The translations under genes were made by a program, and so were the position numbers. Positions 39,979 through 60,765 of a DNA stretch of 64,000 nt are shown here, piece by piece. Numbering within the stretch: position 1 is the stretch's first letter; every line of letters starts with the position of its first letter. The DNA lies in NCBI GenBank assembly GCA_024704765.1, contig JAKMXF010000033.1, positions 620,001 through 684,000 of the forward strand, written 5' to 3'. Source of the stretch: Oopsacas minuta. Taxonomy: Eukaryota > Animalia > Porifera. The notes under the pieces are model-generated. The model did not search any database. It was not told the DNA's origin and saw only the letters and a program-made list of their open reading frames with translations.

Positions 39979-42900
39979 ATGTCTATCCTCTTTCTACACG
40001 AATTCGTAAAAATATCTTTTAGTATACTTTATTCTCTGTGAGTAATGGCAATTATAGCATTTTGACAATTATTATTATTCTTTATTGTTTTATTATATTA
40101 ATGTACAGCCCATGTCAAGATTATACCGGTTCATAAGCCTGCTTCCCAGGCCTTCCCAACAGTTGTCCCTTCGCCTGCCTACGTCACGCGCCTTCTCTGG
40201 CATCATTCCTAAGGTAGCTGGAATCAACAAGAGTAAACAGGTGGTGGAGGATTATGACAAATATGTAGCACAAAACTATACTCCTCTGAAAGACGTAGTG
40301 ATAGCTAGAGGAGAAGGTGTGTATGTATATGATATAGAGGGAAGACGTTATTATGATTTTTTGACTGGATACAGTGCTATGAACCAAGGACATCGACATC
40401 CTAAGATCCTAGCTGCTCTCAAAGAACAGGCTGATAGACTCACACTAACAGGTCGGTGTTATTACAATGACATGTTGGGGAAATATGCTAAATACGCTAC
40501 AGAGCTGCTAGGCTATGACAGACTACTCCCTATGAATGGAGGAGTGGAGGCTTCAGAGAGCTCTATCAAGATGTCTAGAAGATGGGGCTATGAGGTAAGC
40601 AATCTTATAATGCTTATACATATTTTGGGAAATGTCACACTACAGTATTTCACACCTTATTATCCGAGTCAATCGATCAACAGAATACACGAATCGGATA
40701 ATTGATTGGCTGAGTTGGATGATTGAATGAGAAATACACTGTAGACTGTGCAATCTTGTATCCAATGAAAGATTATAATACAGTTCAGTAGCTGGGTTCG
40801 ATAAATCAGACTCAATGGACCGCGATAATTACTCCGATATAATGATAAAATTTCTGTTGCTTTGAAGGTTTGGGACCATATTTGTACAATTACAGACTTC
40901 GATATAACTTTGTTCTATATAATGGGAGTTGACCGTATGTATCTAGTATAAATACTACACAACTAGCTAAATAAGTTTTATTTTTCTCTCCTCTCAGGTG
41001 AAAGGAGTACCAGACAATGAAGCTAAAGTTATTCTCTGTCGCGGCAACTTCTGGGGAAGGAGCATTGCTGCTGCTAGCTCTAGTACTGACCCTTCCTGTT
41101 TCATGGGGTATGGCCCATTCGTTCCCGGATTTGAACTTATACCATTTAACGATATTCCAGCCCTAGAGCATGCTCTCAAGGACCAGCATGTTGTAGCATT
41201 CATGGTAGAGCCGATACAAGGAGAAGCTGGTATTATTGTACCGGACAAGGGATATCTGAGTAAAGCTAGAGAGCTGTGTACTAAGAATAATGTACTGCTT
41301 ATCTGTGATGAAATACAGTGTGGATTAGGAAGGTAAGATTGTATTACTTATACAAGGGAATGGTAAAAATTTTAGATCATTTGGGAAATCATTTCTAATT
41401 CTGTAATAAATCTGGATATTTTGGGTAGATTCATAGGGTGATGAGTGTACACGAGAGGAGCCTCTCTATCTCTATTTATGTATGTCTGTTAATCCTATAG
41501 ATCTGGTAAGATGCTAGCTAGCGAGTATGAATCAGTACGTCCAGACATATTAGTGCTAGGTAAAGCTCTATCTGGTGGATTTATGCCTATATCAGCAGTA
41601 CTAGCAGATGACCAGTATATGTCTATGATGAAGTCTGGCACACACGGTTCTACATTCGGAGGTAACCCTCTTGCATCAGCACTAGCCATCGCTTCTCTTA
41701 GAGCTATCGTAGAAGGAGGTATGTGTGAAAACGCGTACAAGATGGGTGAGATATTCCGCAAAGAAGCAGCTACGTTTAGGCGCGATATAATCAGAGATGT
41801 AAGAGGAATGGGACTATTCAATGCTATTGAATTAAACCCCAATTGTGGAGTAAGTGCTAGTACAGTTAATGAGAAGCTACGTGATCATGGTATACTATCT
41901 AAATCTACTCATGAGTATACGTTCAGGATGGCACCAGCTCTTACGATTAACGAGGAACAGCTGATGGATGCTCTATCTCTCATGAAGAAAGCATTAGAAG
42001 AATGTTAAGCTAGTTTAATACAGACTAATGATTCCCATTACTACTCGCTACAGATTATCAGATTATTTCTACTCTTTATTATTCCGTCCTTATTCTAATT
42101 ATTTCATATATTTGTATTGAAATACATTAATCTCTGTTTATTGTCAATAGTATTCCGAATCTAGTCTAGTCTCTATTTAGCAGATACTCAATTTGGACGG
42201 TTACGCCAGAGAGCGAGATTTTTTAAGAGGTGGGAATGTCAAGTCCAACGGCTCCCAACCTGAGGTCTAGGGACCATTGGTGGTCCACGGTAGACAGCAA
42301 GGGGTCAAGAGGATCTGAAAATTTATATTGCTGTATGGAATGGCTCAACAGATTGTGTTATAATTGGTATATGAGACCCATGAGCCAACAAAGTTGGGAA
42401 AGCTGTGTCACCCCAGTCAATAAACATTTATGGTAAAATTAACTGCACCGAATTGAGTGGTTCCTGAAAATACAACATACACCTATAAAGAATGTTACTA
42501 TTTATAGTAACTTCATTTAATTTAAAATCCATTATTAATATTTCATCATTACTAAAACAGTTAGCTAATGTTTCATTTAACAAGATTACAGAACTCTCCA
42601 CGCTGGGAACCTAATCTTAAATCTCTTACTGCTTTAACAGCTGATAATATATTCTACATCAGCTCTGTAACAGGAGCTACAGACTATCTAGCTGTATCTC
42701 TCAGTACTCACTCAAAGTAAGATCTCAAACATGGTTTCCCTATACCAGCGCTTTCTAACCTTTATCACTCGTGGATCATGGATCCCCTATATTAATTTTA
42801 ACACATTCTGTGGCTCCCTCCCATAGACAAATTTTGAGATCCTGTTGACCCCTCTGTCGTCAGTGGACCACCAAGAGGTCCATGGACCCTAGGCTGGGAA

Positions 42901-45900
42901 CCACTGGCTTATTCTAATCCAATTAAGAGACTACTAATTTGGTTAAGATACACATAACTAGACATTCGTGAAAAAGAACCGCTAATTATTTAGTGTCATT
43001 AGCTAATCTTGATTTAATCCCTATCTTCTCCAGTTCTGTTACCAATTCATCTTCCTGATGCATTTTGAATAATATATCCATACCTCCAAGTAACTCTCCA
43101 TTGAAGAATATTTGAGGTATTGTAGGCCAGCTGGTGTATTCCTTAACTCCCTGTCTTAACGAGTTATCTTCTAGCACATTGATGCTAGAGAACTGTACAC
43201 CGTGTATTTGTAATATCTGTACTACAGCCTTACTGAATCCGCACATAGGACGCTCGGGTGTGCCTTTCATGAATACAACAACTTTATCACTGTTTATTAG
43301 TGTACGAATTTGTGTATTTACTTCACTATCTTCCTCCGTTGTATCTGAGTATAATCTCCTCTGAGGTATAGCCATAGGGAGGGTGTAAGGTATTGAGTAA
43401 TATAGTGATGTAGATATATAGCGTGTTGTTATGACAGGATGTAGTGTAGATATTGTGATTAACTTCCGTAGGTTTAGTACTTTCTTATAAGCCATTTCTA
43501 TTGAAATTATAATATCTATAAATTGCTACAGTTATCTCCCGTTATATCGAACACGGATATATAGACATTCCCGGTTATTTCGAAGTCTGAATTTATATAC
43601 ATATGATCCCAAACCATATTTATACCATTTAAGAGTACCATAAACTTCTTTGGTTATATCGAACTCCGCTTATAATTATCGCGGTCCCTTGAGCTTCTAT
43701 ATAACGGAAGTTGACTGTATAAGAAAGTATTTTAGTTATACGTATATGTTGTTTGTAGAGTCAAGTGTCGAGTAGTAATTCTGAGTATATCACATCCAGA
43801 GACGAGTTTAGAAGATGCTACTCTCCTACTCTACACTTCATCTCCTATCATATTTAGCTCTACACGTAACTCTACTGGATTACTGGTCAGTTTATTGTAT
43901 ATTATTAATATTAGATAATCATACAATCTCTCATAATTATCACACTATAACCCAAAATATTAACATTTTCAGGAAACGAAATAATATAAAAAGCCAAAGA
44001 CAAACTATTTACAATCTAAAATTCTAAAAATAATTAATCCTACTTGCTCTTAGCAACCAAGTTATTCCATAATATGTATGCAAGATTATTTGTTTTTGTA
44101 GAATTCTTCCTTGACCTGTATTAACACACCATCCGTGAACACTACATCAATAGCAGTATGAGCCATAGCTATGCCAGCTATAAGAGTAATTTCATGTGAT
44201 TCTATGGTATTAGACGCTAGATTGAATTCAGTAGTGTGGTTAACTGAGGTTGTATTGAGAGCATATGTTGGGTGTATGCTAGGAACCTCGTAGGAGACAT
44301 TACCCATGTCTGTTGAGAAACTAGACTGTGCCTTATCGGTCTCTATGTCAGGATACGTCATGCCCAACTCCATAGAATTGTTACGATAGATCTCAGCTAA
44401 TATTGAATTTGTTCTCATATCGAAATATGGGATATCACTCTTATTAATAACTACTGTACAACCAGTAGCTGTAGCTCCTGCCTATACAATTAATATGTAA
44501 ATATAACACTGAATTTCTCATATTGCTGATAAACTAATCTTACATTAAAACATCCCTCTAGTTTATCCATCAGCTGTTCCAGTTCAGCGTTATTAGGTGC
44601 TCTAATCATATAACTGAGCACTGCTCTATCAGGTATAACATTAGGTTTTAATCCTCCGTCCGTGAATACTCCATGAGCTCTCCATGTAGGTTTAAATTGC
44701 TGTCGCATCATAGAGACAGCAGAGTATGCATTAACTGCAGCATCCAATGCATTAACTCCCTCCCATGGATATGCTGCTGCATGTGCTGGCTTACCCGTGT
44801 ATGTAATTTCCATACCGTTTAAGCTTAATACATTTGGGTATATTGCGTTAAAATTAGCAGGATGTACCATAATAGCAAAATCTATACCCTTGAATGCTTC
44901 TTTACTTAACATCTTTATCTTACCGCCACCTCCTTCCTCCCCCGGGGTACCTATAACAAAATATTTATATCACTATTTATGCTATAATCAATCGGTTTAC
45001 ATCTCCGAAACGATAAATTTTATCGTTTCGTTCGATATTTCTAAAGATAGGAAAAAATACCGGGAAAATCTCGCGAAAATACCGAAAAATATCTAAATAT
45101 CTAAATAAAAAAATGTAATATATTATCGATATTTTTCATGTCTCACCCATAACAGTTAGCTTAAGTTTAACATCTGGGAATATTTCAATCACTGCTTTAA
45201 TCCCAATAGCAGCTGCTAATCCTGCTTCAGCTATGAGATTATGTCCACATCCATGCTCTACTCCAGGTAGTGCATCATATTCACATATTACGCAGGCGTT
45301 AACATCTGGTTCATCACTCTGAGTATAGTATATAGCTTTGAATGCTGTCGGAAGGATGTATGACCTTTCAACTTTGAACCCTTCTGCCTGTAAGAAATCT
45401 GTGAGTATAGCATGAGCCTTTACTTCCTCCATCATAAGTTCTGGGTGTTTCCATATCTGTTGACTAGCCTCTCTCAACTTATCTCTAGCTCTCTCTCTAT
45501 AGCTCCTGTTATTATAGATTTGGCATCTGTTATCTTCGCTTCATTGCTTTTCGGCTTTTCATTTTCTGGTATCTTTTGGCTCATATCTGCTTCTTGAATA
45601 ACTGATGTACAAAATACTTATTAACATAGTAACGAACGGTTTAATTCAATTGTAGTACGCTTGGCTTGCTAAGACGTTTCCCGACGTAAACAAGTACCCA
45701 ATATTCGGCATTTCGTGCCTCGAGTAGTGAAATAGTAGGACGTGGGTTCCAACCTGGAGTCCACGGGTGAATAAGGTTGGGAACAGCTGTTACGGAATAT
45801 AGTAATATATGTTATACGATTAGTCATCCATTCTAGAATTTATACAACATAGTATAGTAAGTAACACAGTATATTTTACGAATCTTTGTCCAGTCCCGAG

Positions 45901-48900
45901 GAGGCAGGAGACTCGTCTTGTACATCTCCTATCTTCTTACCATCCATCTTCTGTTCCAATAGAGAATGCATTAGTCGCTCATTCGTCAGCGGAGAATGTA
46001 CTGGAGAAGCCGATTCAGGCTCTATGTCTGTGAGAATCTCAGGTTGATCAAAACTAGGAGCATCAGATAGGAATTTATTCAAATCATCATCTCTTGCTAC
46101 ATCTCCCTCTATCTCCACCTCTCCCAGCTGTTTGTCATACTCAGAGGATCCTTGGAACTTCCTATCCACCATCCCTGGTCTTAATGTGCCATACTCTTTG
46201 TATTGTAACATCTGTTGTTGGAACGATTCCGCTAAAAATCTCTGTTTCTGAGCTAAACTCTCCATACGCTGGCGCTCACTGGTTTCTCGTTGTACGTCTC
46301 TCACAACTTTCAGTTTCACGTCCATTTGCTTTAGTTCTTCTTGTCTTGTCTGTTTGTAGACAGAGAACCGACGAAACTCTTCCATTTTAGCTCGCGACAT
46401 CTGTACCTGTGCATTCAAGAGGTCTAGCTCTATCAGACGGAAATTTATCGAACTAATCTCATCAGAGATAGTTGATAAATCTGTTCTTATCTTATCTACC
46501 ATCTGTACTGTTTCAAGTATAGCTTGTAATTCCTTGTGAAACCCATTGTATACTTTCCAACTTTTCTTCGCTTGTTTGTTTACCCTAGCTATCACACGAC
46601 CTAGTCGGTCACCCTCTCCAGCTGATTTCACTGCTCTCTTCCTTATTTCTGCTAAGTTTGCTGCATTCCAAGCCACCAATTCGTAACCAACTCTTGGCGT
46701 GTATATTGCTGCAACTTCTGATGTATCTTCTTGCCCTGGAGCTTCAGCTGTTCTCTTCTTCACGAAGTTAGTAGCGAATTTACGCATCGTGCTCACCTCC
46801 CTGCTGAGCTCCTCTTGAAGAGAGTGAGAAGCATTTGAGAGAGTTTGCCAGGGACGAGGCCAAGAGCCAGACATTCTCTACTATAAACGAATAAACCAGC
46901 GAATATATGAATGTATTTTTATTATAAAGATCACAAAAACCACTTACTTACATAATTGTTCTCAATTATATTATGTAAGATAGCGTGTTTATAATTATGG
47001 CAAATGGATATATGTGCCTCATTATCCTATCCATTTCTATTGGCAATTACTATACTACTTGTTTAGACAGTTGGTGATAAAGTGAATGATTTTAGGGACT
47101 ATCTTGTGTGAATTATTTCATCCATTGTCACTCTACTCGTATTTTAACTCAATGAATCCATGTACTATACTTTCAGGTTAATACATGATTTTGTGATCAC
47201 CGTATGTATTCTTAATTCACGTAACCGTACGTGACCTTACGTATAAGCTCCGCCCCTTTTATTTCTGTAAGAATTTAGAGATAAATAACAAATTTATCTA
47301 GAATACCAGGGCCATAGGAAGCGGTGCAGTCACTTTGGATTCACTACACCGGGCCTGACTACAGTCATGGAACATAATCAACATGGGATTTTCTAACCAG
47401 CAACCCGTGATCCGCTTCACCAAATAAGGTTACTGCATGGTGTAATATTTCAATATAGCAACCTACTCAATTCATCATCAATTATTGCAACCATCCAATA
47501 TACTTATTATACATTTATTGAATAACTATTTGTGGTAACATTCAGCAACTTATGAGTACAATTTATTATGTGAATCCTATAATTAATTGTTCTTCCATCA
47601 GAAACAATACCACTATAATGAATTATGTACAAGATGGTTTCTTATGGTGCAACCATCATATCCTATGATTAGATCTTGACAGCTTAGATACCACATTAGT
47701 ATGTAGTAACAAGGCTTTGCTATTATCCCAAGGTTTCACGTGCACATAGCTATCTATCTTTCAGCTACCGACTCAAGATAACACATTATGATTATTGCAC
47801 GCTGAATGGGAGATGTCTTATAACAACACTGCTATGATCTCTGCTGAATTCTTTCGGTAGTTATGGTATCGTGATTAGGATCAGACACTAATTCGAATTA
47901 TATTTATTGAACTGAAATTCAAAATTTGACGTTTGAAATGGAGAAAACTATTATTCGTGAAGGTTATGTAAAAGTTGGTAAAATAGTTGGCAGAAACATG
48001 AAACGTAAATATTTACGTTTGAAATGTGCATCAACAAACACAATACTAGCTCATATTGAGTATTATGATGATGAAAAGCAATCCAAAAAGAAGAATACTC
48101 CGAATAAAGTTATTCCTATGCGTTCTATCGCAGGGGTACACAAGATAGAAACCAATTCCCCGTTAAAATCCCCCTCAATGGTTCCTTATCATATCAAACT
48201 AGAACTTGTTAAAGACAAGGATAAACTGCACGATATTTATTTCGAAATTGATCCAAAGGATAATTTTGACGATTGGGTGAGTGACCTAGAATTCCTAGTA
48301 CGTCTCCCTGAGCTAAAGATTCCGATTAGTCATATCCCCTTATATGACTGCAGGAGTCCATTTGATCTGAGTATTGTAGAACGAGAAGGGTTTGAAGATG
48401 CATGTCCAGTTTATATCATCAAGAAGGAGTTGGGAGGAAGTTCTTACTTCGAACAGCCGAATGTAATTCTAGCTCTCAAGAAGAATGTTATTCTATTCCT
48501 TGACATGCAGACAGGTTCTCAGCTGTTAGCATTTGATATACAATTCCTACGGAGATGTGGTAACTGGCAACAGCTAATATTCGTAGAAGCAGGTCGTAAG
48601 TCTGTCACTGGGGAAGGATATCTATGGATGTACGTGGAATGTGTAACACTCGCTAAATACTTATACTCCAGTATGTCTAGTATAATGGGTAGTGCTGGTA
48701 ACAAACGGATGGAGCGTAATCTAACATGGAAACAGTACTGTAGCGAATTGTATATGAAATCTAATAACATCAAATCCTCAAATAACTCTCTACCCAATTC
48801 GTTGCCAAGCTGTCAAGAACCTTTCTATATGAACAATGACGTCAGAAGACATCACTCGCTTGTTGACGCGAACAAGCAAGCAGGTTCTAGACTGAGTGAA

Positions 48901-50027
48901 GAGGGGGTATTCTTCTCTGAGACAGGGGTGTTGGATGTTCGTAGCTCCGCATTCACAGACAGAACCTCATACGCATCCTGGTCCTCGGTAATGACACAGG
49001 AGTCCAATTTATCTGTCAGTAGTGATATGTCTAATCCAGATACTAGATATAAATCTGCTACGTTAGATAGGAAGGGGTTTAGGTTCGGAAAGAGACAGTC
49101 CCGTAGCTCTAAGGAGAGCAAATATTTCAGAGTAGGTAACTCTAAGTTCTATAACGGAAACTCATTAACTGATGCTATTCTAGATGCTCCCCTCCCAGTT
49201 TCTACTCCTATCTACCAGGCCCCGTCTAACCTCCCTATTCCCCCTCCCCTTTATCAGACACTCCCTTCTAATCGTGCTAGAGCTACTCTATTCTCAGACA
49301 AACAGTATAACTTATACAAACTAGTTTCTAACAACAAAAAAGTAGATTTCTCTCAGTCTCAAGAAACACCTCGTCCTTCTGACATTTATGACCACTTAGA
49401 TTCAAACCAAGACTCTACACCAGTAGCTCATAGCTCTAGACTACGTGCTAACACATGGCCAGATGCACAGTACATTGATTCTAGCCAGGAAGACTCTTAC
49501 ATGAAGATGGCCACCCCTGATATCCCTGTACCCATCTCTAACCCCTTCTCCTATCTCAATGGAATGTCAGCTAAATCTGAGCTACTAAAAATGTCCTCAC
49601 AAGCCTCTCCTAGGGTAAGAGACTTCCTTACAGAGCTACAGGCTAATCAGATTTCAGAGTCAACAGATGAATTATATGAAGTTATGTCTCATCCAGGTTC
49701 TATAGGTGATGACGTCATGAGTTTGAATAGTATGGACTCTAAGCGTAGCAGTTTAAATTCAATACAATCTCAGCCTGTGTTCAATAGTCCAGATTATATG
49801 AATCAGGAATTTGTTATTCAAGCTAATCAAGCTGCTGCATACCTGCAATCTCTTAGTATCAAAGAAAAGGAAGATACACTCAAGAAGAATAAATTAAATT
49901 ATATAACGCTAAAACACGGTTGTGTACCCGTTCAATCTACGAATAATACTAACGAAATGAAGACAGAGTATGACCTGATAGACCATAAGGCTTCTAAAGT
50001 AATGTTTGAAACAGTTATCCACCACAG

Positions 50028-50069
<42 letters not shown>

Positions 50070-53000
50070 TAATAAGGAAGTTAAGAATTAATATATCGAT
50101 ATTATTGTGTGTATATTTCTTATATATTCTTCAGTAAGGATGATTAATTCTGTGTGATGTACATTTCATTATCTTTATACATTTGGAAAATATTATTTGT
50201 TATTGTTTGTAAAGATATACGTGTTTGTTGAAAGTGCATACTTTCAAGTCACGACCTTTTCACTTCCAGGTTCATTATTGCATAGTTGTCAAGTTTCATG
50301 GATTCAAAGTGAAACTCATGTATTGAATCCAATCTCACTTTCATTTTTACTTTCTCACTCAAATTTACAATTTACAATGAATACAGTATTCATAACGAAA
50401 TGAACACTATTAAGCCATTTTGGTGGGTAGATATCCTATTAGCTAAATTCAACTGCTCTTAAACAAATCTCACAGATAGATTTTACAAAGGTTGCCAACT
50501 TTGTTGTTGTACAGTGTAACCTCTACAAACGGGTTGCCAAGGACGCAGAAAAATGTTACCCTGTAACCCCGTTCGTGGAGGTTCATTTATACGGGACTAA
50601 TAATTTGCTTTATTTATTAAGTTCCAGTTTCCACAGGCCTCGTTTTCGGAGGTTTCACTCTATCTCATTTTTACAAAAATTCAAACTTTTTTGCAGGAAT
50701 ATGTTACTTTTTAATAATTCAAGGATCGCGTTATTTCTAGATTATATTCAATAATTAGCTCTATTCATGTCCTACATAGAAGAAGATCAACCTCCAGACA
50801 GTAAAAAATATATTTGTAGCGGACTTAGACATGACCTTCTTGCTTGTATCAAATCATCACCCTGCTATAAAATGGGGATGTCTCCTAAGGAGTGTCTCAA
50901 AACTGCAGGGGACAATCTAGATCCCAAATGTCCACCACTATATTACGCCTTTTTTGAATGTAAGAGATCTTCATTCGATAATCGATCTCGTTTCAGAGGG
51001 AAAAAAGGCTATTAAACTTTGATTTGAAATTTATTATCAGATATACTTACAATATACAATATACATTCATGGCTCTGTGCAGTATTTAATATATTAATAA
51101 TTGTACCAGAAATTACATGAATGTGTTTACCATCAAGGAACTTGTATAATCTCAATGTGTATTGTATGATATCTAGCAATTGTATGAACTAATTTATATG
51201 ATATTTCTCTAGGTTCAAGAGGATGGTAGTTTAGTCTTGTTCGAAGTTAAAGAAGGATTGCCTCAACTTATAACTTACATCAACATCTTATCCAATCCCG
51301 ACAACATAGTTACCAACTTGTGTGTTAGTTATGCTTCTGATTACTTAATTTGGACAGAAGATAGACAGAAGGAATGTCGTTATAACTCTGTGTTATATAG
51401 CTTGAGTATATTAGCTATAGAAGAAGGACAGCCGGGGGGTGGAAGAGATGTAGTTTGTAGCTGCCTTCCTAAGGTAGAGCTATCTGTCAGTGATACAATT
51501 GTCTTAATGATACCAAAGTAAGTATATTATACATTCATATTTTGTTGTAAGGAATTTATTACGATTCAATATTTGTTTTCTATCCTGAAACCTTTGACAG
51601 AGCAAAATTCTTCTGTGGACTTATCTTCCTATACTCTCTGAAAAGAAAACTATTCAAGGTATTATTTCGAAATACATTGTTCATTGAATGATAATCTGTA
51701 TTCAATGAGTGGATAATCTTATTATTCTTACAGATAGTTAATTTGTGTGAAATCGCGAGTTCTAATCTTCAACCCTGGAAAATTGTTCTTTCTGTAAAAT
51801 ATTTCATGTCACAACAATATTCTCTTGAAACAAAGGTAGTATATATTCTCTATGAACCTAGACGCAGAACCGTTTTCTTTCTCTTAACCAATAGAATGAA
51901 GATGCTGCTCTGATGGTATCAACCTCAACTGGTAGTTTGAATACCTCCTTCTATATATTGGATATGAATAGAGTGTTATGGAGATTGATTATTGATGAAA
52001 GAGAGCTTCTCTTCATAGATATAGTGTGTTCAATTGATTTGGCACCATTTGTATCTGATGAAGTGTTACAGATGACATCATTCCAACAGCTGATTTTCAT
52101 TCTAAAAGGGAACAATTTAAGGTAATAACTGACTCTCTACTTTATTTGAATGTTCATATTATTTCATTTACTAATATTTTGCTGCAATATTAACGATCCA
52201 TTTTATCATATAATGCTCATTTACTTGATGTTTTAGTACTCGTACATATTCTACAGGGTCCACGAACTAACCCAAGGAGTATGTGTTCAATCAGATATAC
52301 GTCCAGATGGAGAGTTCTACATCTATACATATCTATTCCACAAATACAAGAAATTAGCTATCAGTACCAAGACCAATGTATACTTAATAGAGGTAGGAGT
52401 TCAACAGTTTATACATACGTGTTCTTATAATAATATAGCGAAAATGTTCACCAATCGTACTAACCGTTTGGATGATAAACCTAGTATGCACCAATTTTTG
52501 AGACATTTGCATTATATCATAAGGTTACTAGAATAGTAGTATATGTAGTCCTAACATGGATAATTATTTGCCCTCTTAATATAGCCCTTAAATTTACTTG
52601 AATTATTATAAATAATCGCTTCTATCAATTTCAATGTACGAAAGGAATCGTAACCCTAGCACTTATTAACCCGTCAAATGTCTGTTTCTCCTGAGTCTGA
52701 TCAAGCTAGTCACTCACTCCGTCTCAGAGAACGACTCATGGCAATCCAACAGAACAGACAGACAGGAAGGATAGCTACACAGTCTAACACAGATCCTGTA
52801 TCTGATGATAACCTGAAGCTACAAACATTCTCTGTGAAATCATGTAGTGAAGTTAATACTGCCATCAGTGAGAAGGAGCTTTGCTACTATCAAGATCAGG
52901 TAGCCAGACTTCAAACTGAAAACAGTCAGCTGAAAAAGGGAATAGGTGAGAAAGACCGCGATTTAAAGAAATCTCAGGAAGCTCTCCAGGCGATCGGAGC

Positions 53001-56000
53001 AGGAGGTGGAGGAGGGAATGTAGCAGCTAAGATTGTAGAGTTAAGTAAGAAAGTAAGAGAGCTACAGTCTGAATTATACACAGAGCAGAGTAGAAGTATG
53101 AAGTTAGAGAGGAATCAAATAGAACTACAAGAGCTAATTAGATTAGGAGAGGGAGAGTTAGATCAGCTGAGAGATCAGCTGGAGAATAAATCTCCCTCAC
53201 TAGAAGAGCTGTCTCCTTCTGATCAGAAGAAATTAGAGTTGATGAGAGAAGAGGTTACGGATTTGAAGGCTCGATTAATGGAAGGCAAGAACTTGAATCA
53301 ATCAATGAAACAAGAGCTTAGACTAACTCAGAAAGCTCTTACGCAAGAGCTAGGCCCTGACGCAGACAAATACACTCTATCTCAGCTTATTAACTCAGAA
53401 GCTGCTTGGAAGGGAAGAGCTCAACAAATTAAACTTTTGAAGAAGAAAGTGAGTGAGTTGAGAGCTCAGCTACAACAAGATACTGTCAGTACAAATTCAC
53501 AACTTGATACAGAGCGTGACGTCAGCTCTGCTGAGAGATTAGACACCTGTGACATGCGAGTAAGCACGAGGCTATACGGTAGTAGTGTATCTAGTCAGAG
53601 CGATAGACAGAGAGAATTGTTGAAGAAGATGGAGACTAGTCGTAAAGAAACAGCTGAGAAGACACAAAATGAACTTGATGAATTGAGGAAAATTCAAACA
53701 GATTATAAACACAAAAATACAGCACTACAAGCTAGGAACCAGACTCTATCACAGGAAGTTAAACAGCTGAGAAGAGATCTAGCAGACAGTAAGTCACGTG
53801 AGATATCTCTAGCTAAACAATCAGCTGATACTGCTACAACATCTGTTAACAAGAATCAAGCTAATATAGAAGGACTGAAGCAAGAATTACATAAGAAATG
53901 TGTACAAATAGAAAATCTCACTCAAGAGATAAGTAACAACAAAGATCATGTAACGCTACCATCTCTGGGAGAATCTATTAAGAGTTCAAAGGTTAGACAG
54001 GTTGTTAGCAAACCTGGTGTATCACTAAACAGAGGTCATCTGACAGATAACGAGCTCCTGGATATAGCTAGGATCAATGGCATGCTACTAAGTGTTAGTG
54101 TAGAGAGAGATAAATTAAGAGAGCTAGTTAGTCTCATGCAAGAGAGATTACAAGAAGCAGTAGAAATAGGGAGTACACAGGAAACTCTGTTAAGACAGAT
54201 GAAACACTCTAATGCTTTGTTAGAAAAAGAAGCATGTAGGGGCGGTAACAGGTCTGGAGCTGTTCTGACAAGTGACAATGATAGCCTCATGCAGAGGATA
54301 AATATATCAGAAGATGAAAATTCAGCTCTGCAACATAGACTCGCTTCCATCAATCAGTCTAGAAAAGAAGATACACGTATGTATAAAGAAATGCTGGATA
54401 CATCGAGGCAAATTTTCACTGATACATTAAATCAGTTAAGATCAGTAGTTGTTGATAGAGAATCTGTTTGATTACCAGACACACACACACTCACAAGTAT
54501 TAAGTATTCAATGTATATGTGTTAATTAGTTATACACTAATCTAATGATTCGTGAACATGCTCATTACTGAATTTACCCATTATTGCTTATGCTATGTAA
54601 TACCCAGCTCACTTCCGTGTGTATTAAATTTATCACTTGTTCCATGTTAAGTTATCCGAATACAGTGAACCTCCACGAATGCTGAACTTACTACCCCGTT
54701 ACCCCATTTGTGGAGGTTTCACTGTAGTTATCTTTTCAGAAAGGATAGAGTAGATAATTAATATACTACTGAAGTATTTATAGCATAAATATCACTATAA
54801 TGCAGTTTATTGATTGCTTCATCATATCTGTCTACATCTTGCTGTATGTATCTATAACCTCTGCAGACCAACGGTGTCCAGGAGTACCAGACGGAGGATT
54901 CTGTCCTTATGATCCCGCTCGTCTTGACGCTATCGTGTGTTGTGATCTAGGATTTGGACCTCATTGCTGTAATAGTACTGAGTTTGAACAAATCAATAAC
55001 GTAAAGTTCTACGTTCTATGGGGTTCAGTAGGATTAGGGCTATTAGCTGGGTTTGTGTTAGTACCTATCTGTGTTGTTTTAATGCATTTCGCTATACAGA
55101 AATGTCCAAATATTTGTGCAAGAGGCAGTAAGAATAGGAGAGCTCATAAATCAAGCGTTATGCCTCCACGACGTCCAGAGCCCTTAGAAGAGAGGTTATA
55201 CGGCCCAGCTGATGATGATGATCCAGTAGAAAGTAGTGAGTATAGTCAAGCTATTGCAAGCAAGACTTCTCCTTTCTACAGAAAATATTCTGAGCTAACT
55301 GATAAGATACATACAATAGAAACTGATCTTCCGTCTGCATCTACTGGTAACGATATAGCCCACTCTAATCTGTTCTATGATACCCAATTGGAAAAGGAAG
55401 AAGCCGATCTGTTGGATAAACAGAGAATGTTGTGGAGGAAGTCTAGTTTCTCTGAGGGGGGACCTTCTAAACTAGCACTCCCTCCTAAATAGATTGCAAC
55501 CCTATCTCTTATTTTAGACATTATTTATTGATTTTGGTACCTAAAACTACATATTTTCTTATTTTTATGATTAAAATTACACTTTTCTAATTCTTAGTAT
55601 GATTGAGTCATATTTTTTCGCAATTTATTTGCCCAATTTGCATACCTTTTATATCTGAATATTCGATTTATATTATTTGTGTGATTGACCCTGTTTCCTA
55701 TTAGAATCTACCATTGAAAGATCAAGTATCTCATTTGCATGCATCTATCCCAGAAGAGAGTAGACTAGCTACACTTGTTAGAACTCCAGACCTTATCAAG
55801 TCTTGGAATAATAACTCTATACAAATGAAGTCTATATTAGATGCTGCTTACTGGATAATTAAGCAGGTGAGATTATTATAAAGTTACATAAAGTCAACTT
55901 CCGTTAAATCGAAGCTCAAAGGACCGCGATAATTCCGTCGATATAACCCGAGTGAATATATGATACTTTGACGGTTTGGGCCCCCGATATAGCGGGAGTT

Positions 56001-59000
56001 AACAGTATATCGTAATTCATATATTTATATATCATTATTAGATGCCAAATGATTGTAATGAGAATACACATAAAGATGAACTCGAATCTCTCTTCACTCA
56101 ACTCAATCATGAAAGAATTGATAATCCTATTATTCTATTCAACTTATTCTCTAGGGTAATAATAGTTTCCGATTTCCTAATAACATTTGGAGTATTGTAT
56201 TAATTTTCAATTATGTAAATAGTTCCCGAAATTTCAAACAGACTTACACAGAGAGCTAAACTTATACGATAATTCTCTCAAAGACATGAAAGAACTCAGG
56301 GACAATATTATTCCTTTCTATTGTAAAGGAGACTTCTCTAAGAAAATATCTACTCTACCTTCACTGATAGCCGAGCAAGATAATATCATGACTAAAAGGA
56401 ATACAATACAAACTGCTAGCATAGCTGATAAAATACAAACACAAGTTGTTAACTACATAAATTCTGTAGTTAATGAATCTGTTACACATGGAATTTGTGC
56501 AGGTTACAAGAAATACAATGCCATATACAGTGGAACCTTGTTAATACGAATTTCAGGAAATTTATAGAAACTCAGGCCCCTACAATGGCTATTCAATTGG
56601 TATTACTCCGGTTAAAGCGAAAACATTTGGCCGTCCGTTAGTGTTCGTATTAACGAAGTTCCACTGTATTTTACAATAGTAAATCTCAAATTTTGATAGT
56701 TTGTATATGTTTATGTAGCTGTATTGTTTACACACACTTCCTGTCCCATGTTTGTAGGTTATTCGTATAAATTTGAGTATCTCTGTCTTGTAAATCCGGA
56801 GGAAGTATTACAATCTATAAAATATTACTTTTCGCAAGGTAACAAATTATCCAGTAGTTATAATTACAATAATTATGTCCTTATGTGTTTACTGTTAGAT
56901 CACAGACATAATCCTATTGAAAAGATTAATTGGAGGAAGTTATTCAATTCTGTAGAACCAGTCCCCTCAACTATTAAGGTACTATTGAGAGTATCTGCTA
57001 TAGCGTCCCTTTGGTTAATAATTTCACCTAGAATTCGAGTAATATTTTGCATTAATATTACGTACTTAATGAAAGTATATAACAACTTATACTCTAGGTG
57101 TCCGAATAAGCCGCCCCCTTCCTGTTTATTCAGACCCCTAGAGTAGTATATGACTGCACATTTCATAATACTTAATTAGCTATTGCTATATTTTAAAATG
57201 GATACTCTACCAGATAATTTACTGAGTCAACTAGTGACCTCACCATCAACAGGAGATAATCTACCCATTAACGATACCACCCCTCAATCTATCAATATAC
57301 TACCTACACCTGTATTCTGTTTGAAAACTAAGCTAAACAATACTAATGATAAGATATTCATAAACGTGTGTACTTCTGATCAGATGAAGAAGCCTCCTGA
57401 CGTCACAGATGAAGAGCTGATTAAAATAATACGTACACAGGATTGCTCTCAATACCGTGTACCTTTATCTCTAGGAGAACCTCGTACTGAGCTTGATCGA
57501 TCACACAATGCATGTGTGGTATATGATGTCATCGTACATAGCTGTCTCTACACCGAATCACAAAAACGACCTATTATGATGGAGTTCTTACTACTGCTAT
57601 TGGTGGAGGGACTAGAAGCTAAATACGATATAGAATTGAATAGAGAAATGAGACGTATGCAGAACATTAAATGCATGGGTACACCCACAGAACACAGGAT
57701 CAGGACGCAGAGCAAGCCTAGGATTGAGATGGAAGAGAATGATGATGTCATCGAATCTAATACTTATTCTCCATTAATAACTGAGGTTAATACTAACACA
57801 CAATCTGTATCATCTCCTATACCGGAGTATACACTGACTAAAGATCCTCCTGATACACATCCTGAATACATAGTGCTAGAGGCTAAACTCCCTCTATTAA
57901 AGAGCAGCAAACATGTAGAATTGAATATAGGAGAAGATAGGATTGTTCTAACTGCACATCCTGACAGGTACCATCTAGACCTGTGTCTACCTTATTACGT
58001 CATACCAGGACAAGTAGGAGCTCAGTTTGATAAGAAGACTAAGCTACTATCTATTACTATGAGTGTGCAGAAATTATAACTATCTCTTATTAAGTGTATC
58101 ATCATTCAATTAAAGTTATTAATCAAATTAGATAAATATACATTCCTCCATAAACGAGGCCTGTGGATTGTGGAAACCGAGCGAAAAATTAATAGACCAA
58201 ATTCCCAGTCTCATACAAATGAACCTCCACAAACAGGAAAATTGGCAGAAACGGGGTAACCGGGGTAGTAATCTTCGGCGTCCCTGTCACCACGTTTGTG
58301 GAGGTCAGACAGTGTAATATGTTATTTCCATTTAGAATAGTTTAATATTATATAATTCTATCCAAATAGGATGGTAGAGATATATTTCCGTCAATATTCG
58401 AGACGGTCTGCCGTTTGGTATTTCAATATGATCCTGAATACTTAGTGAGTTATAAGCAAATATTTATGTAACAACACTACTACTATATACCTTATGTTTA
58501 GATTCCGTTTATAAACAAATGTCAACACCTGTTAGATGTAGATTGCTCTAAAGAACCAGCATTTATGCGTAAGAGTAGTCACGCACAAACCTACCAACGA
58601 GCGCTAGAGAGTCTCCCCGATCTATCCTATCTGCTAAGTGGTAACCAGGAGCTGACAACTTCTAAAGCTATTACGTACTATAAAGTCCTAAATAACAGGT
58701 TATAGGAGGAGCATGAGTATATGTATATTCCATTAATTACGAGTTAATATTATTTGTAGTAAAACACTCAATTCTGGCATTAAATGTATACAAATACTAG
58801 CGGCTGTATCAGAATGGAAGACTGCACTAAATGTACTACAACAATACACACAAAATGTAACTGATTGGATATTTACAAGTTATATGCACAAGATTTACAA
58901 TGTCTCGCTTCTTTAGGACTATCTACATTTCTATCTATTTACCACTCTGTCATATCTGATGAACAAGGTGATAATATTGTATATTATTTATGACCCTCAA

Positions 59001-60350
59001 TAGGCAGCCTGATTCAGAAAGCGTATATATTTCCTTTTAATATTACTTAGGTTGGAGTACTGTCTGATTTCTCTGAAGAACTTTACTTAATGAAAACCAA
59101 TAATTACAGGTAAGCCCATACGTATATACAAGTATAATAAAGATGTAATCTACTTCTTAACCTTCGCGATTTCGAATGAGATCTTTTTTAACATATTATT
59201 TTACACATTTCAGTTTACCTATTCATAGCCATTCAGACCTAATTAGCACTCTCATACTTCTAAATTGTTTATTAGTCGAGAATAATGGCAGAACCCGATG
59301 ACTTGCCCCCTCTGGAAGATTTCTCTCCACTTTTCGAAAAGCTAAGCGCCTCAAATCAAACTAACAGTACCCAGCAGACTGATGCTATTAGTACTATCCC
59401 AAATGTACCATTGGAAAATATCAAGGAAGAAAAACCAAAGACAGATTCATTTGGTGGGTTACGTAAAGGATTTCTGAATCCTAAACCTAAGAAAGAAATT
59501 TCACAAGAAGTAACTATGTTAAAGAGTAATCCTTCAAAAGGTGGAGCTTCTGTTAAAATGGATGAGATGAAGAGAGCTGTTGATGACTCAATGAAAGAAC
59601 AGATATCATTACTACCAGAGAATTGGATGACAGATAGTCTGCTAGACAAGGTAGAGAGTAATCCTATGCTAGCTCAAGCCTTCAGACATCCAGAATTCTC
59701 AAATGTTATAACACGATTCACTCAGAATCCTACTCAAGCTATTCATGACTATGGAGATACACCAGCATTTCGTGAGTTCTTCAAAGAGATGTGTGCTTTA
59801 CTGAGTCAGCACTTCACTCAGCTTGCCGATGAGACAGAAGGTGATGTAGAAGAGGTTCAGATTGAAGATGAGGAGGATAAGAAAATGAGAGAAATATTAT
59901 GTAAAGAGGATGTACAGGAAGCTATGCAAGATCCAAGAATTCGACAGCTGGTCATGGATATGAAACAAAACCCAGAACGTGCACAAAATACCTTTATTAC
60001 TGCATCACCTCAGCTTAAGAGGAAAATATACGTACTCACTAATAATAATATAATTGGCTTACAGAGTAAATAGATACTACCTCTGTATATCACTTCTTTA
60101 TGCTATTGGAATGTACTATCAAAACTTAAGTATTAGTTTTAAAGTCAAAAGTATATTTTTCCGTTTTACAATAATTCGTGAGTTTACTGTATCTGTATAC
60201 TTACTGTGTATGTTATTGTGTAGCGTGGGAGAGCATCTACAGATGTTCAATCAGCTGTCTAACTACCATCCTGACAATCCTACTAATGAAGGTGACAACA
60301 ATGTAGCCCCATTCTTGAAGATACTACTCCGTGAGGATCTGATCCAGTAA
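39979..60350 (+). CDS. HPS6: HPS6-like (BLOC-2 subunit), 18-19 exons, about 790 aa; host of 9-10 nested genes
   Basis: Exons [39979-40037 tentative], 42585-42716, 43759-43885, 51213-51517, 51601-51658, 51734-51835, 51895-52121, 52257-52392, 55705-55866, 56155-56191, 56242-56502, 56758-56838, 56899-56978, 58370-58444, 58502-58698, 58760-58856, 58917-58967, 59051-59109, 60224-60350. All are GT-AG and phase-compatible; total 2373 nt. Colinear with remembered HPS6: GLL|VQEDG vs LVLVWESG; LIWTEDRQ vs LVWCEERQ; [30 protein letters not shown] vs [37 protein letters not shown] vs YRRALAVL; EWKTAL vs QWDRAL. Confidence 0.78.
40112..42008 (+). CDS. OAT: Ornithine aminotransferase, mitochondrial, 3 exons
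   Basis: Exons 40112-40594, 40998-41332, 41501-42008. Motifs [39 protein letters not shown]|[11 protein letters not shown] and [10 protein letters not shown]. Confidence 0.96.
40779..40937. mobile_element. MITE family A in OAT intron 1
   Basis: Core GGACCGCGATAATTAC and right end TAATGGGAGTTGACCGTA. Confidence 0.7.
42245..42407 (+). mobile_element. hAT-type MITE, copy 1
   Basis: CCAACGGCTCCCAACCTGAGGTC ... AAGTTGGGAAAGCTGTG. Confidence 0.7.
42745..42907 (-). mobile_element. hAT-type MITE, copy 2, inverted relative to copy 1
   Basis: Its reverse complement CCAGTGGTTCCCAGCCTAGGGTCCATGGACC...AGGGGTCAACAGGATCTCAAAATTT aligns with copy 1. Confidence 0.75.
42986..43495 (-). CDS. GLRX5: Monothiol glutaredoxin 5, mitochondrial, intronless, nested in an HPS6-like intron
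   Basis: [42 protein letters not shown]. Confidence 0.95.
   Translation of the reverse strand: MAYKKVLNLRKLITISTLHPVITTRYISTSLYYSIPYTLPMAIPQRRLYSDTTEEDSEVNTQIRTLINSDKVVVFMKGTPERPMCGFSKAVVQILQIHGVQFSSINVLEDNSLRQGVKEYTSWPTIPQIFFNGELLGGMDILFKMHQEDELVTELEKIGIKSRLANDTK
43527..43719. mobile_element. MITE family A
   Basis: TACAGTTATCTCCCGTTATATCG ... ATATAACGGAAGTTGACTGTA. Confidence 0.85.
44086..45584 (-). CDS. PM20D2: Peptidase M20 domain-containing 2 (Xaa-Arg dipeptidase-like), 3 exons, with an apparent 2-bp frameshift in exon 1
   Basis: [29 protein letters not shown]|[37 protein letters not shown]...PSIHP. The ATG at 45584 is out of frame with the rest because of a (GA)5 run at 45489-45498. 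Confidence 0.85.
45876..46874 (-). CDS. DTNBP1: Dysbindin (BLOC-1 subunit 8), intronless, nested in an HPS6-like intron
   Basis: [30 protein letters not shown] vs remembered [30 protein letters not shown]; [23 protein letters not shown] vs [23 protein letters not shown]; acidic tail. Confidence 0.8.
   Translation of the reverse strand: MSGSWPRPWQTLSNASHSLQEELSREVSTMRKFATNFVKKRTAEAPGQEDTSEVAAIYTPRVGYELVAWNAANLAEIRKRAVKSAGEGDRLGRVIARVNKQAKKSWKVYNGFHKELQAILETVQMVDKIRTDLSTISDEISSINFRLIELDLLNAQVQMSRAKMEEFRRFSVYKQTRQEELKQMDVKLKVVRDVQRETSERQRMESLAQKQRFLAESFQQQMLQYKEYGTLRPGMVDRKFQGSSEYDKQLGEVEIEGDVARDDDLNKFLSDAPSFDQPEILTDIEPESASPVHSPLTNERLMHSLLEQKMDGKKIGDVQDESPASSGLDKDS
47938..50091 (+). CDS. IRS/DOK-family PH-PTB docking protein, intronless, nested on the same strand
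   Basis: PH domain (IIREGYVKV...FDDWVSDL), IRS-type PTB ([29 protein letters not shown]), tail with YMKM, YEVM and YMN motifs, poly-Asn end. Confidence 0.85.
50029..50067. repeat. (AAT)13 coding microsatellite (poly-Asn)
   Basis: Direct reading at the end of the IRS-like ORF. Confidence 0.9.
50510..50660. mobile_element. MITE (AACCTCCAC/GTGGAGGTT family)
   Basis: TACAGTGTAACCTCTACAAACG ... CGGAGGTTTCACT; related to 54661-54726 and 58140-58316. Confidence 0.6.
50767..51015 (+). CDS. COA5: Cytochrome c oxidase assembly factor 5 (PET191), nested on the same strand
   Basis: Twin CX9C pattern and [23 protein letters not shown]. Confidence 0.93.
   Translation: MSYIEEDQPPDSKKYICSGLRHDLLACIKSSPCYKMGMSPKECLKTAGDNLDPKCPPLYYAFFECKRSSFDNRSRFRGKKGY
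52678..54471 (+). CDS. CCDC13: Coiled-coil domain-containing 13-like, intronless, nested on the same strand
   Basis: [18 protein letters not shown] and [16 protein letters not shown] match remembered CCDC13 motifs. Confidence 0.8.
   Translation: MSVSPESDQASHSLRLRERLMAIQQNRQTGRIATQSNTDPVSDDNLKLQTFSVKSCSEVNTAISEKELCYYQDQVARLQTENSQLKKGIGEKDRDLKKSQEALQAIGAGGGGGNVAAKIVELSKKVRELQSELYTEQSRSMKLERNQIELQELIRLGEGELDQLRDQLENKSPSLEELSPSDQKKLELMREEVTDLKARLMEGKNLNQSMKQELRLTQKALTQELGPDADKYTLSQLINSEAAWKGRAQQIKLLKKKVSELRAQLQQDTVSTNSQLDTERDVSSAERLDTCDMRVSTRLYGSSVSSQSDRQRELLKKMETSRKETAEKTQNELDELRKIQTDYKHKNTALQARNQTLSQEVKQLRRDLADSKSREISLAKQSADTATTSVNKNQANIEGLKQELHKKCVQIENLTQEISNNKDHVTLPSLGESIKSSKVRQVVSKPGVSLNRGHLTDNELLDIARINGMLLSVSVERDKLRELVSLMQERLQEAVEIGSTQETLLRQMKHSNALLEKEACRGGNRSGAVLTSDNDSLMQRINISEDENSALQHRLASINQSRKEDTRMYKEMLDTSRQIFTDTLNQLRSVVVDRESV
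54661..54726. mobile_element. 66-bp MITE
   Basis: TACAGTGAACCTCCACGAAT ... ATTTGTGGAGGTTTCACTGTA. Confidence 0.75.
54800..55492 (+). CDS. Type I membrane protein with a small Cys-rich ectodomain (Shisa/WBP1/VOPP1-like), nested on the same strand
   Basis: Signal peptide; [11 protein letters not shown]...[13 protein letters not shown]; [25 protein letters not shown]; low-complexity tail. Confidence 0.65.
   Translation: MQFIDCFIISVYILLYVSITSADQRCPGVPDGGFCPYDPARLDAIVCCDLGFGPHCCNSTEFEQINNVKFYVLWGSVGLGLLAGFVLVPICVVLMHFAIQKCPNICARGSKNRRAHKSSVMPPRRPEPLEERLYGPADDDDPVESSEYSQAIASKTSPFYRKYSELTDKIHTIETDLPSASTGNDIAHSNLFYDTQLEKEEADLLDKQRMLWRKSSFSEGGPSKLALPPK
55889..56007. mobile_element. MITE family A, internally deleted
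   Basis: AAGTCAACTTCCGTTAAATCGAAGCTCAAAGGACCGCGATAATT ... GATATAGCGGGAGTTAACAGTA. Confidence 0.7.
56526..56668. mobile_element. MITE in an HPS6-like intron
   Basis: TACAGTGGAACCTTGTTAATACGAA ... TTCGTATTAACGAAGTTCCACTGTA, near-perfect 25-bp TIR. Confidence 0.85.
57198..58079 (+). CDS. PIH1D1: PIH1 domain-containing protein 1 (R2TP), intronless, nested on the same strand
   Basis: [37 protein letters not shown]; C-terminal CS-like domain LDLCLPY...[14 protein letters not shown]. Confidence 0.85.
   Translation: MDTLPDNLLSQLVTSPSTGDNLPINDTTPQSINILPTPVFCLKTKLNNTNDKIFINVCTSDQMKKPPDVTDEELIKIIRTQDCSQYRVPLSLGEPRTELDRSHNACVVYDVIVHSCLYTESQKRPIMMEFLLLLLVEGLEAKYDIELNREMRRMQNIKCMGTPTEHRIRTQSKPRIEMEENDDVIESNTYSPLITEVNTNTQSVSSPIPEYTLTKDPPDTHPEYIVLEAKLPLLKSSKHVELNIGEDRIVLTAHPDRYHLDLCLPYYVIPGQVGAQFDKKTKLLSITMSVQKL
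58140..58316. mobile_element. MITE (AACCTCCAC family)
   Basis: CCTCCATAAACGAGGCCTGTGG ... CGTTTGTGGAGGTCAGACAGTGTA. Confidence 0.55.
59285..60073 (+). CDS. Uncharacterised protein with two STI1/DP-type motifs, intronless, nested on the same strand
   Basis: [71 protein letters not shown]. Confidence 0.7.
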   Translation: MAEPDDLPPLEDFSPLFEKLSASNQTNSTQQTDAISTIPNVPLENIKEEKPKTDSFGGLRKGFLNPKPKKEISQEVTMLKSNPSKGGASVKMDEMKRAVDDSMKEQISLLPENWMTDSLLDKVESNPMLAQAFRHPEFSNVITRFTQNPTQAIHDYGDTPAFREFFKEMCALLSQHFTQLADETEGDVEEVQIEDEEDKKMREILCKEDVQEAMQDPRIRQLVMDMKQNPERAQNTFITASPQLKRKIYVLTNNNIIGLQSK

Positions 60351-60765
60351 CAACGTTAGAGATAAAAATTTACATAGTTTTAAAATTTATAGTTAAGATA
60401 TTGATGTGTATGTAATTTGTGAATTGTGAATGTTTGTATATTTTCACGAATGTATAAAATATGTCGCCTGCTTCATAACCTGACTTCCGGAGTCAGAATC
60501 AAGCAAACCCAAATTCTGAATCCGTTCGATAAAAGTCCAATTTATGCATTTGCTCTACAACAAAGTTCGGGATTCGACTTAGAATAAATCTACACGAAAG
60601 CTCAAATTCAACTACCCAATCACTTAACAGTTATCTGTAACTCCCAAAACAATAGACATACAAAGGTTTATGCTTAACTTGTAAACATATGTACAAAGTG
60701 AATATTTATAATTAAAATAAAGCTGTAGAAAACACAATGAAATGATCAGAAAATATTAAAATATT

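Follow-up and report, generated by a model that had tools for sequence, protein, structure and literature searches.

A probable HPS6 gene with nine complete genes nested in its introns in the glass sponge Oopsacas minuta

In the genome of the glass sponge Oopsacas minuta, a series of small plus-strand exons is interspersed with complete genes in a 64,000-nucleotide stretch of DNA (contig JAKMXF010000033.1, positions 620,001 to 684,000; hereafter the window), raising the question of whether these exons form a single gene that carries the others in its introns, and which gene that would be. The NCBI annotation has no gene spanning 42-60 kb of the window. The original prediction, made from the sequence letters, proposed 19 exons encoding a 790-aa protein colinear with HPS6. 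HPS6, one of the BLOC-2 subunits, consists of a beta-propeller and an alpha-solenoid, assembles with HPS3 and HPS5, and acts in trafficking from endosomes to lysosome-related organelles; the human protein has ~775 aa and is encoded by an intronless gene. Our analysis points to one protein-coding host gene at window 42568-60350 on the plus strand, with 16 coding exons and nine complete guest genes, and with HPS6 as its most likely identity. We put the probability of this reading at roughly 75%.

In stop-to-stop frames and by a codon-usage score, the coding signal of the small plus-strand pieces was weak but positive. A crude chain search with splice-site and codon scores recovered 43885, 51213, 52392>55705 and 59109>60224, although it was run with the nested ORFs masked, which favors recovery of those boundaries. 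In the spliced model, the small exons on the plus strand from 42568 to 60350 join in phase into a single open frame, as had been proposed, with the exon count corrected to 16 coding exons and the product to 757 aa. The gene runs over 17.8 kb from an ATG at 42568 to a stop codon at 60348-60350, with a coding sequence of 2,274 nt. Every one of its 15 introns is GT..AG; ten are guest-free (57-255 nt) and five are guest-bearing (1.0-7.3 kb). The exons are as follows, where L003, L004 and L005 are contigs of related species and X4 is an RNA run, both described below.

42568..42716, plus strand: predicted host exon 1, beginning at the ATG (MFHLT...); start peptide and donor kept in L004 and L005
43759..43885, plus strand: host exon 2; 74-76% aa identity to L004/L005, with equal length and phase; read-through of the donor unconserved
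51213..51517, plus strand: host exon 3; kept in L003-L005; in-frame stop before it in all four taxa; beta-propeller-like features
51601..51658, plus strand: host exon 4; 58 nt, with the same GT/AG sites in L003-L005
51895..52121, plus strand: host exon 5; kept in L003-L005
52257..52392, plus strand: host exon 6; 136 nt in all taxa; last 28 nt joined to 55705 on an X4 RNA contig
55705..55866, plus strand: host exon 7; RNA joints 52392>55705 and 55866>56042
56042..56155, plus strand: host exon 8; RNA joints on both sides
56223..56502, plus strand: host exon 9; RNA joints on both sides
56758..56838, plus strand: host exon 10; RNA joints on both sides
56899..56978, plus strand: host exon 11; RNA joints 56838>56899 and 56978>58370
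58370..58444, plus strand: host exon 12; RNA joints on both sides; within the HPS6_C match
58502..58698, plus strand: host exon 13; RNA joints on both sides; 78-83% aa identity in relatives; within the HPS6_C match
58760..58856, plus strand: probable host exon 14; RNA joint 58698>58760; donor placed by conservation
59051..59109, plus strand: predicted host exon 15; 59 nt and GT/AG sites in four taxa; 68-74% aa identity
60224..60350, plus strand: predicted host exon 16, with the stop codon; 79-82% aa identity to L003-L005, where it lies 3' of their STI1 genes

When 1.84 billion representative sequences were searched with exon 9 using phmmer, the sole relative was P0001, a glass-sponge fragment of 79 aa; a full-length orthologue was not found. 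This fragment is encoded on contig L003 (run SRR11455651), and a profile search with exon 3 found two further fragments, on the large ENA contigs L004 and L005. Among the three contigs, exons are ~90% identical and small introns ~80%. From this divergence (~10% in exons, ~20% in introns) and a dS of ~1.2 to O. minuta, we read them as other glass sponges. Using tblastn and splice-aware projection, the host exons were found in the same order in all three, with exons 3-16 on L003 and all 16 on L004 and L005, and every exon covered retains its phase and its GT/AG sites. L005 has an intact frame of 764 aa, with 12 of the 16 exon lengths the same as in O. minuta; the two host proteins are 65.8% identical, with dN 0.20 and dS 1.16 (dN/dS ~0.18 over 751 codons). 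Judged by dN/dS, phases and splice sites in four taxa, the host gene is under coding constraint over its whole length. In L004 alone, exon 9 is thrown out of frame by two extra nucleotides within a CT repeat (L004:14620-14640), which could reflect an error of long-read assembly or a genuine lesion.

Nine complete guest genes were found in five of the host introns, three of them antisense and six sense to the host:

42986..43495, minus strand: glutaredoxin, 169 aa, in intron 1; Pfam Glutaredoxin E 7.6e-21; same site in L004/L005
44086..45435, minus strand: M20 peptidase, 363 aa, multi-exon, in intron 2; annotated, with Peptidase_M20 and M20_dimer; missing from L004/L005
45876..46874, minus strand: 332-aa protein (originally named DTNBP1), in intron 2; 73% aa identity to L004/L005
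47938..50091, plus strand: IRS-type PTB protein, 717 aa, in intron 2; Pfam IRS E 3.4e-08; position conserved
50767..51015, plus strand: COA5/PET191, 82 aa, with its own stop, in intron 2; Pet191_N E 6.5e-20 over residues 17-78
52678..54471, plus strand: 597-aa protein (originally named CCDC13), in intron 6; annotated; orthologues of 587-603 aa in L003-L005
54800..55492, plus strand: 230-aa protein (originally named Shisa-like), in intron 6; annotated; high X4 RNA depth; orthologues of 221-226 aa
57198..58079, plus strand: PIH1D1-like protein, 293 aa, in intron 11; PIH1 E 3.2e-36 and PIH1_CS E 3.8e-16; own RNA contig from 57178
59285..60073, plus strand: STI1/HOP DP-domain protein, 262 aa, in intron 15; STI1-HOP_DP E 7.7e-10; own RNA contigs; position conserved

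The guests are complete genes and not host exons. Each has its own start and stop, gene calls in the three relatives treat them as genes of their own, and the PIH1, STI1 and 230-aa genes have separate X4 RNA contigs of differing depth. As stand-alone ORFs, five guests carry Pfam domains above cut-offs (glutaredoxin, IRS-PTB, PET191/COA5, PIH1 with PIH1_CS, and STI1-DP), in agreement with their initial assignment as GLRX5, IRS-like, COA5, PIH1D1 and STI1. The names DTNBP1, CCDC13 and Shisa do not find such backing in Pfam: the 332-, 597- and 230-aa proteins match no Pfam family, and the first of them has no Dysbindin match. The initial count was nine to ten nested genes, from which nine stand and the tenth, OAT, is dropped as not nested (see below). 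The intron of 7.3 kb that was said to hold four genes would correspond to 43886-51212 (7,327 nt), and four guests do lie in it.

Eight of the nine guests occupy the same introns in the relatives, between the same host exons: glutaredoxin and the 332-aa gene on the minus strand, IRS, COA5, PIH1 and STI1 on the plus strand, and the genes of ~590 aa and ~226 aa (both also on the plus strand). The full 82-aa COA5 ORF is kept in L004 and L005, and residues 21-82 are present at the contig edge in L003. The exception is the M20 peptidase, which is found in O. minuta only. In the matching intron of L005, a MULE transposase with RING fingers is located at L005:2283-3986, so the content of the large intron turns over.

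For direct evidence of splicing, reads of several runs were aligned over 54400-60399. Runs X1 and X3 are genomic, while run X4 acts as RNA, with spliced contigs, exon-shaped depth and contig ends in adapter sequence. Its contigs cover nine of the 15 host GT..AG junctions, each on an exon boundary of the model. The joints, given after the aligner's stated cut shift, include 55866>56042, 56155>56223, 56502>56758, 56838>56899, 56978>58370, 58444>58502 and 58698>58760. Five of these, from 55866>56042 through 56978>58370, are borne by one 726-nt contig, so a single RNA contig spans exons 7-12 and skips the whole PIH1 ORF. In the X4 data, a 28-nt loose end before 55703 matches window 52363-52390 exactly, which places a junction at 52392>55705, over the 597-aa and 230-aa genes. 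These two long-range junctions, 56978>58370 and 52392>55705, are among the four that the original prediction had named. Host splicing over three guests (PIH1, 597-aa and 230-aa) is thereby shown by RNA, and the remaining three guest-bearing introns are supported by conservation. X4 depth is zero at 59000-59199 and 60200-60399, where exons 15 and 16 lie, and we infer the join 59109>60224 from exon, phase and GT/AG conservation in L003-L005. Junctions 42716>43759, 51517>51601, 51658>51895, 52121>52257 and 58856>59051 are likewise predicted, as the relatives share these exons with their phases and GT/AG sites.

Two other features of the read alignments were observed. At 54701-54726, 55888-55921, 56580-56670 and 58187-58258, unrelated contigs from DNA runs pile up to 3-6 times the depth of the flanks with odd joints, and these stretches in the host introns look like dispersed repeats. 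Run X5, labelled as another organism, contains PIH1, STI1 and exon 11 at 95-99% identity and low depth (56866-60000), suggesting either a close relative of O. minuta or a divergent population of this species.

The deposited gene models divide the same exons differently. A 353-aa 'Pet191_N' model (50767-52536) consists of COA5 plus host exons, a 637-aa 'PIH1' model (55825-59113) consists of host exons, PIH1 and further host exons, and host exons 1, 2 and 16 are missing from the NCBI models. If these models were correct, COA5 and PIH1 would be genuine fusion proteins and there would be no nesting. Apart from their being the models on deposit, the evidence runs the other way: the RNA contig passing from 56978 to 58370 bypasses the whole PIH1 ORF, no X4 joint within 54400-60399 connects a host exon with that ORF, PIH1 RNA begins at 57178, the joint between exons 6 and 7 links the two supposed genes, and the relatives carry PIH1 and COA5 each as a complete, stand-alone ORF. 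The annotation pipeline also yields just 83 nested genes in O. minuta versus 2,432 in Aphrocallistes vastus, a gap ascribed to the annotation method, and a nested A. vastus gene has been found annotated in O. minuta as the starting exon of another gene (PMC10282587). We consider it extremely improbable that the two fusions are real. The original prediction that annotation splits the host is borne out, its exons having been absorbed into two chimeric models. Because the public annotation disallows nesting, it fused host exons to COA5 and PIH1 and left out exons 1, 2 and 16.

The 5′ end of the host gene was revised. O. minuta, L004 and L005 share the start peptide and the motif TAGCTAATG. Exon 1 was originally placed at 39979, which is unconserved in the relatives, and the start is now assigned to the conserved ATG at 42568. 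Since neither that exon nor the frame at 42227-42433 is conserved, OAT sits upstream of the conserved start codon and thus outside the host. The open frame at 42227-42433, tried as a host exon and rejected, is within an inverted duplication specific to O. minuta. The duplicated segments (~139 nt, 42250-42387 and 42772-42902, 74% identity) flank host exon 1 on both sides; the core consists of two near-perfect arms, and the duplication is missing from L004 and L005. The motif itself (window 42557-42570, L004:3785-3798, L005:748-761) has an acceptor-like AG three bases 5′ of the host ATG, which could mark a 5′-UTR intron, a trans-splice acceptor, or simply the context of the start codon.

We infer the join of exons 2 and 3, 43885>51213, from phase compatibility, conserved exons and GT/AG sites. 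Exons 1-2 might instead fall outside the host gene, with the true 5′ end elsewhere, for example in an unrecognized exon in the 7.3-kb interval, and the four-gene intron would then not exist as drawn. An in-frame stop directly precedes exon 3 in four taxa, so an upstream exon is required, and exon 3 starts in phase 0 immediately after it; the donor that closes exon 2 in phase 0 is kept in three taxa, while read-through past it is unconserved and meets early stops. The sole other plus-strand candidate, 50443-50562, came from the chain search and was rejected as unconserved in relatives, and COA5 is complete with its own stop. A different 5′ end is therefore very improbable, and we retain exons 1 and 2 in the host model.

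Turning to the identity of the host protein, several human HPS6 motifs appeared to be colinear with it and served as a lead. When the 76-aa peptide of exons 12 and 13 was compared with 24,736 Pfam families, PF20468 HPS6_C came out best, with E 0.0098 and a score of 15.3 bits, below the cut-off of 27. The aligned part, profile positions 175-230 (56 of the 387), crosses the RNA-verified exon 12/13 junction and puts the domain at host residues ~408-757, C-terminal as expected. Because HPS6 had been named as the hypothesis beforehand, this sub-threshold match counts as real support, and we regard the host as a likely, if unproven, sponge orthologue of HPS6. Taken singly, none of 53 exon pieces from four taxa matched PF15702 or PF20468. 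For PF15702, the N-terminal family of HPS6, no N-terminal exon matched at E up to 10 in four taxa, with pieces of 42-101 aa that give the search low power.

Further searches with individual exons did not add to the assignment. ESM Atlas look-ups of exons 9 and 13 gave no lead, PDB profile searches with exons 3 and 13 returned chance matches only, and JGI metagenome scans with both exon alignments detected no relative. Searches for homologous proteins with exons 9 and 13 found none, using a length filter that drops full-length relatives of exon-sized queries. Seven ORF pieces looked up exactly are absent from the protein collection, the paper supplements do not mention HPS6, and AlphaFold2 on exon 3 alone with a 4-sequence alignment reached a pLDDT of 35, too low for a usable model. 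HPS6 has a WD40-like N-terminus followed by an alpha-solenoid and is undetected by BLAST outside vertebrates (PMC11513930). This invisibility across phyla would explain the weak host signals, and the beta-propeller-like features of exon 3 fit the WD40-like N-terminus (PMC11513930).

The nearest language-model neighbours of exon 3, at low recognition, are all beta-propellers (VPS11, VPS41, WD40) and not HPS6. Together with single exons that match nothing and one sub-threshold match as the sole Pfam support, they would also suit a real host gene that encodes something else, either another poorly conserved propeller/solenoid trafficking protein (RMC1/Bulli or HPS3/HPS5-like) or a lineage-specific protein; RMC1 has the same architecture as HPS6 (PMC11513930). 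Yet no host piece matched an RMC1, VPS or HPS3/5 Pfam family, while HPS6_C, a hypothesis set in advance, ranked first across all families, in colinear position and across a verified junction. We hold an identity other than HPS6 to be unlikely, though still worth weighing. The host is comparable to HPS6 in its length (757 aa, close to the 775 aa of the human protein), its propeller-like N-terminal exon and its best Pfam match at the colinear C-terminus; it differs in that this match is below the curated threshold, the N-terminal domain is undetected, and the gene has 15 introns against none in the human gene.

If the model is right, the host would be transcribed through 17.8 kb, and ten short and five guest-bearing introns would be removed from its pre-mRNA, with the guests acting as separate transcription units. 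For STI1, COA5, PIH1 and the 230-aa gene, 150-290 nt separate the end of the guest from the host acceptor that follows. As separate units ending so shortly before these acceptors, the sense guests have 3′ ends that host polymerases would have to pass and presumably read through. Sense guests start 175-675 nt past the preceding host donor or gene (175-328 nt in four of them), except IRS at 1,063 nt. This short spacing, combined with positions kept across a dS of ~1.2, raises the possibility that guests are non-autonomous, and sense guests may need the host to be transcribed, serving as alternative terminal exons or being released from host pre-mRNA by operon-like processing. We consider such dependence improbable; if true, one promoter would drive a trafficking gene together with chaperone and mitochondrial assembly genes.

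The original prediction noted that nesting may already be known in glass sponges, and this is indeed published (PMC10282587), making the O. minuta host a further example of a known phenomenon. Similar to the guests described here, the nested genes of A. vastus are complete, often single-exon genes in host introns of a very compact genome, many are conserved among hexactinellids, and such genes are fused or go missing in the annotation of O. minuta (PMC10282587). In comparison, the O. minuta host is a previously unreported case, in which five introns of a 17.8-kb gene harbour nine guests, six of them on the host strand, and RNA shows splicing across three of the guests. It is a well-documented example of one host with nine guests, eight of which keep their place in other glass sponges, and a useful test bed for transcription and termination of sense guests inside a host intron.

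The practical value of the locus is in an unannotated gene, probably HPS6, and two chimeric database proteins. At least two deposited proteins, the 353-aa 'COA5' and the 637-aa 'PIH1', are chimeric and would lead analyses of orthology and gene loss astray. This matters for O. minuta in particular, as the headline claim of its genome is the loss of core metazoan genes, and the host adds to its gene set a gene that was missing from it, probably HPS6.
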